Positions 22,101 through 58,067 of a stretch of 64,000 bases of DNA are shown in pieces. Positions within the stretch are counted from its first letter, which is position 1, and the number at the start of each line of letters is the position of its first letter. The DNA comes from Macrostomum lignano (taxonomy: Eukaryota), in NCBI GenBank assembly GCA_002269645.1, contig NIVC01003063.1, positions 1-64,000 on the forward strand, written 5' to 3'. The translations under genes were made by a program, and so were the position numbers. The notes beneath the pieces were generated by a model that worked only from the letters and a program-made list of their open reading frames with translations, was not told the DNA's origin and did no database searches.

Positions 22101-25100
22101 CGTCTCCGTTACTCGCTTTACTTTGCTCTGAGCTTCCGTATCATTGTGACTGGACCCGTTCAACGATGCAGCAGAAGAGTTCACGGTGCTTTCTGAGGCT
22201 ACCCAGATGTTTGATCCAGTCAAAACAATGTCTGAAATCGGCGAAAAGTCGAATACACGTCAGCTGTCTTGATTGCCATCTCTTAAACAAAAATGTAATT
22301 CGAGTCGTACCTGGTCCTAAAAAGGCCCTTGAGTCAGCTGGGATTTTTTCGCCGATGCGGCCAAAGCTGTGGCTGATTTCTGAAAGCTTCTCGGCTGCAC
22401 TCTCCTGAAAAAGTAATAGCCAATAATAATCATCCTTCTGATTAGAATTTGTGCCATCACAGCTGCTGCTTGCTTACCTGAGACTCAACTGTGACCTGAT
22501 TGACTCTGTCTACAGGGATTGCGTTTTTCAAAGCATAATTCACTTGCTCAAGATCCTCAGGCGTGTCCACAGAGAAATTGGCTACGATTGAAATTATATT
22601 GCTTCGAAGCTGCAAAAAAATGATCATATTACACTCAGACTATTGGCAAAGTTTTGCATTTCGCATTGGACAACTATGTCATGCATTACAGTTTCAACTT
22701 GAAAAAAATTCCTTGGCTTTTAAAACTTGCTGTAAAAAATGCGAAATACAGAAAAGATAAACCTTGTCTACGATCTAGTCTTAAAGATTTCAAAATCTCT
22801 TTCCCACAGGCTGACCTCCGTCATTCTGCTATAATAGTCCTCCGTCTTCTCAGCAGTGGCATTGGCTCCTTCAGCATCCTCGTTCTTTGCGTTCATCACG
22901 GATGCCAAGCACACGACAGTGGTGGCAGCCGCCTGTTGGTTTCCGCTTTGCAGGTGACGGTCCAAGTCGTCGTTTGACCCGTCAAAAATTGCAGTCAGCT
23001 TTTCGAGTAGGACGCTCGCCGGGATTGGAGGCGGATAAACCTGCATTTGTGGCCGAGGCTTAACATGTTATATTTCTGCTATTAATATGTTTTTAGGCCA
23101 CTGCTATCTGCTACTTACAGTAACATCGAATATAAACGCGATCTTATCTCCGACGCTATCGATAACGTTGATGTAAGCGTCAGACCTAAATCCATGTGTA
23201 GCAGAGCCAACAGGCAGCAGAACCGGAGGCGAAACGGCTGTTGGTCCATAGAACAACAGAATAGTTTGCTTGGTTCCCTTCGGTCGAATGCGATATTCGT
23301 ACTTGAGGCTGTTTGATGTGGCGTTGAATTCCTGCCAGCCCCAGCATGAAATCTGATATTTGGTGATCATAGCGTAGCCCGCAGTTGGATTGATGGTGCA
23401 GTTGCCTCCACTAGCAGGCATATTCATTAAAAAGGTTTTCTTAACTGTGACCGGACCCTCTTGTCCGTAGCTTGATATTGACACCCGGATCAGGTAGACA
23501 ATACCCAGAGTCATTGTGTTTGGCTTTCGGATCAGTGTTCTGCTTGTGAAACCTGAGCAAAAGGGTGTTTTTGTGATGATTGTGTTATTTTCGGAAAGGA
23601 AATATTAATTTCTTTAATAAACCACTTACCCGACTCTGTGACATCATCCAGATTCTCGTAATTGATATCAGTGAGTTTTCTCATTTCCCAAACGAAAGAC
23701 AGACCTGAAAACTTTGTGCCACAGTTTTCTGTGCAATCCGCTAGGTAAACCAAAGGAATTGAGCCTCGAACCCTCTCGGCACAGTTGCTAACACATCTGA
23801 AAATCAGATGAGCACGTTGAACCTCCTCATAGAACAAAAATCATGATTATTCGGACAGATACCAATCAATAGATGAAAAATTCTTACAAAATTCTCACAG
23901 ACGCCCGTCTCTGAGGCGAAATAAATATTTTCCAATCAGCAATGGCGCCGCGCATATCCTTTGACAAAATAACACGGATCAAGTACGTCTTATTGGGAAG
24001 CATGTGAAAGGTACTAAGCATTAACGTAGCCATCTCGTTCTGCTCCATGAAGATTCCAATGCCGTTTCCAAAGCAGCCGGAGTATCCTTCCAGATCTTGG
24101 CTCACAGGAATGCTAATCCGAGTTGCGACATTGTCAGGAAGTGACGGCAGCTCCGCCTCCTGCAGACAAATCCAGCGAAACGCCATGCCCGTCAGATTCC
24201 CATCCTCCACGTCCCAGTCCCGAGGCGACAGCTCCAGCCTGACAGTTTCGTTGTAGGCAGCGGAGGCCTGTGTTGACTCATTGTTGAAGCTCAGCGTCAG
24301 AGGTGTCTCCGTGATTTTGAGGAAAAACGCGAACTCTGCAGACACCGGAGGCGTCACGGCAAACATGGATAGGTTGAGTACAATCTTGTACAGACCATAC
24401 CAGAGTGTGCGGTTGGGAACCTGCAGCAGAAATGAGTTACCGAGACCCAGGCTGACTTCAGCTCCGGCTGCATTCAGAACTCGCCAGCGCCAATACGTGT
24501 TGCTTGTCTTCGTGCAGTTTAGCTCCGGAAGACCCTCAACGACGATCTCCTGGGACCTCATCAGCTGCAGAGGCCTCTCGGGATCCCACTGGGTCAGAAT
24601 CCGACCAGCATGAGAAAAGTTCAGCTTTGGTTTGTCGCACATCCAGTCGAGTATAATTGCCAGAGTTTCGGCTGTGTCGTTGCTGACATGGTTGAATGCT
24701 AGCAGAGAAGCCGAGAAGCCACCAAGACTTGGATAAACGTGAGAAAACGAAAACGACGTGTTATTGTAACCAATCTCAGTAAAATTGATGCCGTGACTAT
24801 CAGAGTAGGGCTGACACAAAAATGGAATGCCAAAGCTGATCGATGTAGAGTCTCCAAAATCTACGACAAAACAGCTGTTTGTGCCGAATCTGGTGATGTT
24901 TAAGAAGAAGAAAGTCGCGTTCGATAAGAAGGCCGAACCGTTCGTTTTGAAGCTTCCGACTATGACAGCATCGAGCACAATGTCTACAGAGATCGGAAGC
25001 GTTTGGAAGGAGGTGTCACGTGACTCTTGTTTTCAAAAAGCTTTATCTAAATATTTAAATCAGCAACTAGACTCACCGACGGGAAACCCGAGGACTCCAA

Positions 25101-58067: not shown

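Follow-up and report, generated by a model that had tools for sequence, protein, structure and literature searches.

The 64,000-nt window analysed here (positions 1-64,000 of contig NIVC01003063.1, Macrostomum lignano assembly GCA_002269645.1; coordinates are those of the window unless stated otherwise) probably carries one minus-strand gene, running from 58067 to 17439 (∼40.6 kb, ∼62 exons), for a PKD1L-type membrane receptor or channel of ∼5,230 aa. The C-terminal part of the predicted protein is a clear PKD1-like core. The ectodomain in front of it is a tandemly duplicated super-module; in this array of discoidin, F-type-lectin-like and C-type lectin units we see a candidate binding or tethering arm.

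The lectin array is very probably joined to the PKD1-like core

The lectin exons almost certainly belong to one gene with the PKD1-like core, as a preliminary description of this DNA had proposed, judging from the open last discoidin exon, the in-frame acceptors behind it and the synteny at a second locus. The last discoidin exon (unit DS4) contains no stop and ends ...GFPV G/GTGAGT, with a phase-1 donor at 25077. The open reading frame (ORF) that follows opens 45 nt downstream of this donor; two candidate acceptors, at 25025 and 24983, are both in frame, giving an intron of 50-93 nt. Alignment of SFQTLPISVDIVLDAV to SFQSIPITVDIVLDAV of P0001 (BOX15_Mlig000329g1), a PKD1-like protein of M. lignano, favours the acceptor at 25025. 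The REJ exon itself has no Met for ∼130 codons and no signal peptide.

The comparison locus, L001, is M. lignano NIVC01000168.1:770545-815390, whose upstream 10 kb are numbered 1-10000; matches at L001 were handled as cross-species orthologues, and the source line names the window contig M. lignano too. There are no annotated genes in the 10-kb flank upstream of P0001 at this locus. In this flank, tblastn found orthologues of eight units of the array, all within 7 kb, in the same order and on the same strand, with 40-65% identity. The DS4 exon of L001 ends in the identical FPV G/GTGAGT donor, and would run into an in-frame stop 11 codons on if it were left unspliced. The junction positions and phases of the three exons of unit FT2 are also identical between the window and L001. 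The shared order and strand of the eight units, together with the conserved donor after the last discoidin, argue for one gene. At both loci the array is conserved, is predicted to be spliced onward, and is linked to a PKD1-like core.

P0001 starts with MQRASGHFTMAAF..., which is not signal-peptide-like. This suggests that the model is truncated, and P0001 is very likely a gene model lacking its 5′ part. The identity of the arm to L001 (40-65%) is similar to that of the core (51-62%), so evolution of the arm is not exceptionally fast. More C-type lectin domain (CTLD)-like ORFs were observed at ∼8.1-9.1 kb of L001, before the annotated start of P0001.

Gene model and evidence for coding

Large minus-strand ORFs at 17.6-25.0 kb are polycystin-core-like, and short GT-AG introns occur in the window. 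Pfam searches of unspliced ORF concatenations were nearly empty, returning no more than a transposase helix-turn-helix and one half of a Lectin_C domain; a gene model was needed because the domains are split across 2-4 exons. Exons were chained by dynamic programming, using codon log-odds trained on these large ORFs and position weight matrices for donors and acceptors. The first pass gave a single minus-strand chain (58.4-17.4 kb) with 64 exons and 4,930 aa; the chainer was then retrained on the sites it had found, and a stricter run placed the start at ATG 58067. Splice sites were curated by hand, guided by module-to-module paralogy (for example, donor 48629 was taken over 48740, and a GC donor at 33737). 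The curated chain contains 62 exons and 5,229 aa, from ATG 58067 to the stop at 17439, with no stop other than the terminal one.

With one exception, the introns of the curated chain are GT-AG, with canonical GTRAGT/YAG sites; in the well-supported 3′ half they are 66-93 nt in length, with GTRAGT donors and TTTCAG-type acceptors. The exception is a GC-AG intron of 83 nt (33654-33736, minus strand, donor G/GCAAGT) within unit G2; it is required by the reading frame and equally by comparison with the paralogous exon of G1. The phase-consistent exon chain from a signal peptide at 58067, as first described, was recovered, and all positions given for its parts correspond to real features.

The best minus-strand chain in the 25.1-58.4 kb interval has a score of 851 (47 exons, 8.5 kb coding), compared to 101 for the plus strand and 15-31 for five shuffles; this contrast is inflated and partly circular, because the model was partly trained on the same gene. 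Independent proof of coding comes from the protein similarity among the internal-repeat exons, and from the 40-65% amino acid identity to M. lignano DNA. In the hydropathy profile, the signal peptide is the sole hydrophobic segment before the first transmembrane segment (TM1), apart from one β-strand. No membrane segment lies between the signal peptide and residue 4251, so that the extracellular region of ∼4,230 aa continues uninterrupted to TM1; nine clear TM peaks, plus weaker ones, follow after residue 4250.

The PKD1-like core

The core comprises the C-terminal 2,049 aa (25025-17439, minus strand). On the spliced core, Pfam matched REJ (190.4 bits), Polycystin_dom (77.8), PKD_channel (53.8), Ion_trans (25.9) and, below their cut-offs, PLAT (17.2) and PKD (15.1). 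The REJ match spans profile positions 4-450 of 452. The PLAT match covers positions 1-100 of 117 (Pfam cut-off 23 bits) and is located directly after TM1; the M. lignano homologue scores 21.4 bits. Three M. lignano PKD1-like proteins are the closest database proteins to the core, the best being P0001, with 58% identity over 99% of the query; PKD1-like proteins of scallop, amphioxus and nemertean come next, with 22-26% identity. This ranking points to a macrostomid-type flatworm as the source of the DNA. The core exons were confirmed by tblastn of P0001 (51-62% identity), with homology beginning at ∼25020. A protein-database similarity search using the REJ ORF returned no match.

The preliminary description had given the order PKD-REJ-GAIN-PLAT-channel. 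The core is indeed found at 25025-17439, but its GPS/GAIN part went undetected. The GPS-like motif, CSMWDSSLGVWITPSKVC...KPRFVSNLFGSFGV, is degenerate; it retains the first half (CSMWD...W...C) and has FVSNLFG in place of CxC-HLT, which makes shedding by autoproteolysis unlikely.

The ectodomain is a duplicated array

The array makes up the first ∼3,190 extracellular residues, as ∼2.5 copies of a super-module of seven units whose exon phases are conserved. Its layout is signal peptide; [DS1-U2-CTLD-L-G-XY-DS2-FT] twice; [DS1c-U2c-CTLD3-L3-DS3-DS4]; then PKD/REJ and the remaining core. In ORF-versus-ORF blastp of the minus strand, the region 52.9-41.6 kb is paralogous, exon by exon, to 36.8-31.2 kb and also to 31.1-25.1 kb. 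Between 52.9-41.6 and 36.8-31.2 kb, for example, the E-values are 4e-5 and 6e-7 for the CTLD halves, 6e-5 and 4e-7 for the G exons, 4e-8 (3.9e-8) for X, 2e-3 for Y, and 6e-5 and 1e-3 for the discoidin C-terminal exons. Length class and phase are retained among paralogous exons: both FT1 and FT2 read 2>1, 2>0, 0>1, and the U2/CTLD exons of modules 1 and 3 follow an identical pattern (130 nt 0>1, then 2>2, then 1>1). Five discoidin, three C-type lectin and four F-type-lectin-like units are supported; ∼10 units have no fold assignment (Table 1).

Table 1. Coordinates of the units and domains of the predicted gene, and of the orthologous units at L001
Feature	Position	Strand	Exons or parts	Evidence and remarks
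First coding exon	57989-58067	minus		ATG 58067; signal peptide MLKLFLRIFACCSVVGVWPAGDAQSI; start picked by gene finder
DS1a	55062-57546	minus	57546-57200, 55218-55062	β-rich, discoidin-like motifs WVRIYFPLNFTVTGFLV ... LQLDLIGHP; second exon uncertain
U2a	52722-53741	minus	53741-53524, 52851-52722	∼115 aa, β-rich; paralogous to U2b and U2c
CTLD1	51624-52648	minus	52648-52480, 51823-51624	Pfam Lectin_C 28.3 bits, profile positions 2-106/107
G1	48629-50553	minus	50553-50431, 50327-50223, 49179-48946, 48862-48629	∼230 aa, four exons
XY1	47124-48329	minus	48329-48160, 47451-47124	Paralogous to XY2 (E=3.9e-8 and 0.002)
DS2a	42537-44312	minus	44312-44230, 44118-43975, 42678-42537	Pfam F5_F8_type_C 27.2 bits, E=4.5e-6, just below the 28.2 cut-off
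FT1	41629-42451	minus	42451-42227, 41966-41827, 41722-41629	FT2-like exon phases; member of the profile that matches only F-type lectins in PDB
Module 2 start	35352-41182	minus	DS1b 41182-40944, 40263-40113; U2b 40020-39824, 36798-∼36670; CTLD2 ∼36669-36500, 35563-35352	Paralogous to module 1
G2	33420-34523	minus	34523-34407, 34310-34203, 33964-33737 (GC donor), 33653-33420	C-terminal part F-type-lectin-like
XY2	32372-33122	minus	33122-32956, 32866-32372	M. lignano A0A1I8GUS6 (P0007) matches, E=7e-34
DS2b	31935-32309	minus	32309-32157, 32082-31935	Pfam F5_F8_type_C 16.9 bits, E=0.007; weak neuropilin b1 matches (PDB)
FT2	31163-31818	minus	31818-31594, 31501-31347, 31250-31163	hhalign to the F-type lectin domain profile 84%, P=7.6e-6
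DS1c	29063-31083	minus	31083-30898, 30790-30591, 29207-29063	Lactadherin C2 (PDB) E=2e-7; Pfam 23.0 bits
U2c, CTLD3 and linker L3	27362-28972	minus	U2c 28972-28776, 28580-28451; CTLD3 28250-28046, 27970-27732; L3 27616-27362	
DS3 and DS4	25077-27279	minus	DS3 27279-27145, 25958-25753, 25662-∼25519; DS4 ∼25518-25077	DS4 discoidin-like
Weak PKD repeat, then REJ	22917-25025	minus	REJ approx. 24525-22917	Pfam REJ 190.4 bits, PKD 15.1 bits
Rest of core	17439-22816	minus	GPS-like ∼21431; TM1 ∼21233-21177; PLAT ∼21074-20560; further TMs; Polycystin/TOP; PKD_channel exon ∼19166-17657; stop 17441-17439	
Unit orthologues at L001	L001 positions	gene strand	DS2b 9-456; FT2 607-1235; DS1c 1313-2415; U2c 2539-2944; CTLD3 4295-5116; L3 5249-5494; DS3 5572-6502; DS4 6518-6979	tblastn

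Discoidin and C-type lectin units

The preliminary description had counted seven to nine discoidin units. Five are statistically supported, and five more that carry discoidin-like end motifs (DS1a, DS1b and U2a-c) are not assignable. DS3 matches Pfam F5_F8_type_C with 33.2-40.2 bits, above the cut-off of 28.2, as well as the factor VIII/V C domains and CASPR2 (E=6e-5 to 1e-3). DS4 is not recognised by Pfam, but hhalign places it at 95% (P=4e-8) against the profile of the other four discoidins of the window, and DS3 and DS4 together give a tandem C1-C2 match to pseutarin (E=9e-6). The C-terminal exon of DS2a is similar to those of DS2b and DS3.

All three CTLDs that were first noticed, at 27.7, 35.3-36.8 and 51.6-52.6 kb, were confirmed, with Lectin_C scores of 27.8, 16.8 and 28.3 bits, respectively. 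CTLD1 (52648-51624) and CTLD3 (28250-27732) are above the Pfam cut-off of 22.6 bits; CTLD2 (36669-35352) is sub-threshold, and among PDB sequences it matches lithostathine (E=0.005) and also CEL-I. CTLDs that bind sugar in a Ca2+-dependent manner possess EPN or QPD together with WND. The EPN/QPD...WND combination is absent in all three CTLDs of the array, which read RPAPN...MVD (CTLD1), QPS...AHE (CTLD2) and QPS...WST (CTLD3).

F-type-lectin-like units

F-type-lectin-like units had been described at 31163-31853, 33420-33990 and 41630-42451. All three are real exon groups, and profile comparisons point to remote F-type lectin homology; a Pfam assignment is what they lack. A fourth unit of this kind was found at 49179-48629. 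The F-type lectin domain (FTLD) profile used for comparison was built from PDB sequences (1k12, both domains of 3cqo, 4gwi and 2j1r). The FT1+FT2 profile aligned to it over 116 columns with 84% (P=7.6e-6), and hhalign values across the FT profiles were 84% and 71.5%. As controls, FT1+FT2 gave 0.8% against the window discoidin profile, and the discoidin profile gave 2% against FTLD. G1 and G2 share 30% identity over their full length. The N-terminus of G1 opens with C..PLL, as discoidin domains do, and its C-terminal two thirds are F-type-lectin-like; the G1+G2 profile scored 62% (P=7.7e-5) against FTLD, matching over the C-terminal two thirds, and 0.2% against discoidin. Beyond this match, the PDB and hhalign comparisons yielded no convincing assignment for the G units.

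The profile of FT2, M. lignano FT2 and FT1 was also searched, by hmmsearch, against 177,635 PDB sequences. The sole matches at E≤10 were two F-type lectins, FBP32 (3cqo, E=0.0017, 134 of 155 positions) and eel agglutinin (1k12, E=0.55), at modest significance. With the FT1+FT2-only profile, SPOP matches outranked FBP32; these were spurious, since they vanish once the M. lignano orthologue is added. A failure of standard hidden Markov models to assign FTP had been set beforehand as a ground for rejecting the F-type reading. Pfam was empty, and only the profile-profile and profile-versus-PDB comparisons recover F-type lectins. At the level of remote homology, and with modest significance, the F-type-lectin reading of these sequences appears right.

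F-type lectins are characterized by the fucose motif HX24RXDX4(R/K) and the cation motif hhDGx (PMC5712786). The fucose motif is unmet in all three sequences: in FT2 the His alone is kept (CFQHS) and R-x-D is missing at a distance of 24-27 residues; FT1 reads CWIET and M. lignano FT2 reads CIRAS. The cation motif reads PVDGN in FT2 and AVDGN in M. lignano FT2; in FT1 it is shifted (VNDGS).

Units without fold assignment

DS1a, DS1b, U2a-c, XY1/2 and L1-3 have no meaningful PDB or hhalign assignment. Neither DS1a nor DS1b has a Pfam match; the first exon of DS1a has a coding score of 74.5, and hhalign gave DS1a 0.2% against the window discoidins. U2a scored 6-7% to the discoidin profile as well as to the FTLD profile. 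The XY units are 165-220 aa in size and β-rich, and XY1 has neither Pfam nor PDB match. Searched against 1.84 billion representative proteins, the Y-exon profile found one match, the M. lignano fragment A0A1I8GUS6 (191 aa, 44-51% identity), which runs across the X/Y splice junction as modelled; no XY relatives outside Macrostomum were detected among these proteins. The UniProt label of the fragment, "CUB domain-containing", is not reproduced by Pfam. The predicted structure of the single-exon Y2 (pLDDT 36) was not used. A word-indexed protein search with the 3,190-aa ectodomain as query was empty. This was a false negative, because the exhaustive profile search found A0A1I8GUS6, a 51%-identical fragment that lies within the 15-billion-protein collection searched; an empty result of this search for a long query of many domains is therefore no sign of absence.

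Proposed function and alternative explanations

The protein would operate together with a PKD2-like subunit, in sensory cells with cilia or perhaps in sperm. Its long, modular arm would offer multivalent binding or tethering to extracellular matrix, to mucus, or to glycoconjugate or protein ligands on surfaces. Ligand engagement or pull on the arm would reach the channel by way of REJ and the TOP domain. As the GPS cleavage residues (CxC-HL/T) are lost, the arm probably stays covalently attached and is not shed as a soluble agonist. Canonical sugar-binding residues are absent in the CTLDs and F-type units, therefore binding may be non-canonical or protein-directed. In planarians, rheosensation and the sensing of vibration require pkd1L-2 and pkd2L-1, and ciliated mechanosensory neurons are involved (PMC11448475). 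The N-terminus of PC-1, with its CTLD, activates PC-1/PC-2 via the TOP domain, the CTLD acting on PC-2 TOP glycans (PMC7728438). The lectin domains (CTLDs) of sea-urchin REJ proteins function in gamete and egg-jelly recognition (PMC1934368).

Several observations weigh against a single functional receptor gene of this kind. The gene model is an ab initio and homology-based prediction, and it contains weak 5′ exons (55218-55062, 51543-51298 and 41182-40113) and weak exons at 19.7-19.2 kb. Pfam is blind to the F-type-like, G, XY, U2, DS1a/b and DS4 units, and returned nothing for FT1, FT2, G1, G2 or M. lignano FT2 at E≤5. The PLAT and PKD matches are under the Pfam cut-offs, and no Pfam GPS match was found in the core at E≤0.1. 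Between the array and the REJ exon, M. lignano has ∼1,450 aa (discoidin-like, Fibrinogen_C and PKD repeats) that are absent in the window gene; because these residues are missing here, the direct DS4-to-REJ join is lineage-specific, and it could in principle reflect deletion or assembly collapse. The partner, the cell type, the ligands and the tether model are what we infer from the domain content and the precedents above.

Among the alternatives, the one that survives best is a true glycan sensor, in which the CTLD, F-type and discoidin modules bind sugars of gametes, prey, substrate or microbes and thereby gate the channel. We regard it as possible but doubtful. Lectin-type folds of three kinds recur many times, the hhDGx cation motif is retained in FT2 and M. 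lignano FT2, and the sea-urchin REJ CTLDs that recognise egg jelly (PMC1934368) and the PC-1 CTLD that acts on TOP glycans (PMC7728438) provide precedents. However, CTLD1-3 have no EPN/QPD...WND, HX24RXDX4(R/K) is unmet in FT1, FT2 and M. lignano FT2, and discoidin domains frequently bind lipids or proteins. The binding sites thus give no backing to the glycan sensing that the preliminary description had suggested, as both the CTLD motif and the fucose triad are missing and even the lone His of FT2 is lost in M. lignano.

That the window contains two genes, a secreted multi-lectin gene (58.07-25.08 kb) directly upstream of a PKD1-like gene (25.03-17.44 kb), is improbable. The M. lignano annotation does separate them: P0001 starts 3 kb past the array, the array is unannotated, and A0A1I8GUS6 is a separate 191-aa model. 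Trans-splicing occurs in flatworms and could supply the downstream part with its own 5′ end. Against this, the last lectin exon is stop-free, and the strong donor at its end recurs in M. lignano. The gap to the REJ exon is just 50-93 nt, and the frame is preserved with either acceptor. A separate downstream gene would have no start codon, and its REJ region, 1,000 aa of extracellular sequence, would have no signal peptide; P0001's own start is not signal-peptide-like either. Marginally less probable still is a decaying or chimeric copy, in which deletion or assembly collapse fused the array to the REJ exon and the locus may make no working protein: the missing ∼1,450 aa of P0001, a near-identical paralogue 43 kb upstream (3′ 3.4 kb duplicated, 60.8-64.0 kb, 93-97% nt) and the transposon remnants and satellites in the introns would fit it, but 5,229 codons are open over 62 exons with intact splice sites, either acceptor keeps the frame at the junction, and array (40-65%) and core (51-62%) are similarly identical to M. 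lignano, as purifying selection predicts.

Neighbouring features in the window

Upstream of the predicted gene, another PKD1-like gene is represented by its 3′ end in the minus-strand region 60815-64000, its ectodomain lying beyond the window. This 3′ end shares 93-97% nt identity with 17439-20902, introns included, which points to a recent tandem duplication (∼43 kb) or gene conversion. Downstream, a single-exon minus-strand ORF of 333 aa (6898-7896) encodes a signal peptide, a stretch rich in proline and alanine, and a pair of C-type lectin domains (Lectin_C 60.6 bits, two stretches), and is predicted to be a separate small secreted lectin gene. On the plus strand, 8641-12358 contains an 876-aa ORF with PDZ domains (97 bits, two stretches), and ZU5 is found in the next ORF; this combination suggests a ZO-1-like scaffold protein.

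The introns of the array contain repetitive elements. A Tc1/mariner-type transposase remnant (46148-46432, minus strand; HTH_38 25.7 bits) is located in the 2.8-kb intron between XY1 and DS2a. Intronic satellites occur at 38285-38859 (24-bp unit, 24 copies), 54544-54898 (20-bp unit, 18 copies), 41301-41587 ((CTAA)x72) and 29780-30286 (two inverted 65-bp arrays). The satellites at 38285-38859 and 54544-54898 produce long but spurious ORFs, which gene prediction may wrongly take for exons.

Relation to known systems and significance

The ectodomains of PKD1-family proteins are known mosaics of LRR, WSC, CTLD, SUEL, EGF and PKD repeats (PMC1934368). Like vertebrate polycystin-1 and PKD1L2/PKD1L3, the window protein contains REJ, a sub-threshold PLAT match after TM1, an 11-TM-type topology, TOP/Polycystin, a PKD_channel-like end and at least one CTLD (PMC1934368, PMC7728438). 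Different from them, it has no LRR or WSC, at most one weak PKD repeat and a degenerate GPS, and its ectodomain is the duplicated discoidin/F-type-like/CTLD array. M. lignano P0001 and P0002 (A0A1I8GUP3) are alike in the core, with 57-58% identity over REJ-PLAT-channel and a shared core exon layout; as annotated, P0001 differs in having no lectin array, and it carries the ∼1,450 aa (a discoidin-like domain, Fibrinogen_C and a run of PKD repeats) that are missing from the window gene. Sea-urchin SpREJ1-10 are also PKD1-family proteins with variable lectin ectodomains (CTLD, SUEL lectin and EGF), but no discoidin or F-type lectin is reported for them, and their modules are far fewer (PMC1934368).

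In Bbelb_116690 (P0005) of Branchiostoma belcheri, REJ, GPS, PLAT, Polycystin_dom and PKD_channel occur together with a pair of F5_F8_type_C domains and one galactose-binding domain of NedA-like type. This amphioxus protein differs in several respects: core identity is 25%, the extra domain is CBM32/NedA-like (ALDGNTSTYW...) and not F-type, EGF and Sushi are present, and there is neither a CTLD nor a duplicated super-module. FT1 and FT2 align across the whole ∼140-aa domain of F-type lectins (Anguilla AAA, 1k12; Morone FBP32, 3cqo) and of mosaic FTLD proteins such as Drosophila furrowed, sharing with F-type lectins hhDGx and motifs of the DGN, C..H/..., W.VDL and L.LCE.EVYG type. They differ in that the fucose triad is absent, in being invisible to Pfam, and in being embedded in a polycystin. 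The nearest functional precedent is the planarian pkd1L-2/pkd2L-1 pair, a flatworm PKD1-like/PKD2-like pair in ciliated sensory neurons, for which no lectin array is described (PMC11448475).

The literature search found no report of a polycystin with F-type lectin domains, InterPro architectures being outside its scope, and no description of an architecture combining a polycystin with F-type lectin or discoidin domains. The impression of an architecture unfamiliar among polycystins therefore holds for the F-type lectins; it holds less well for the rest, as the array is also found at L001 and discoidin occurs with REJ and PKD_channel in amphioxus. The gene is most likely an unusual, lineage-restricted member of the known PKD1 family, and no new category of system. 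There is a small chance that it represents a macrostomid polycystin gated by a ∼20-module lectin-type arm, with the first F-type-lectin domains in the PKD1 family, recognising ligands of partner or sperm, prey or microbes. If true, tandem paralogues with different arms would be a small family of recognition receptors with an ion channel wired to them directly.

The PKD1 family is generally seen as coupling a TRPP channel to recognition outside the cell or to force, and few ligands of its ectodomains are known. Current M. lignano gene models very likely truncate the gene, and they leave the array unannotated. With the array included, the F-type-lectin fold would gain a PKD1-family context, and the conserved, duplicated discoidin/CTLD/F-type-like arm may become a tractable case for how ectodomain composition sets the stimulus, in an animal, Macrostomum, that offers RNA interference, transgenesis and in situ methods.

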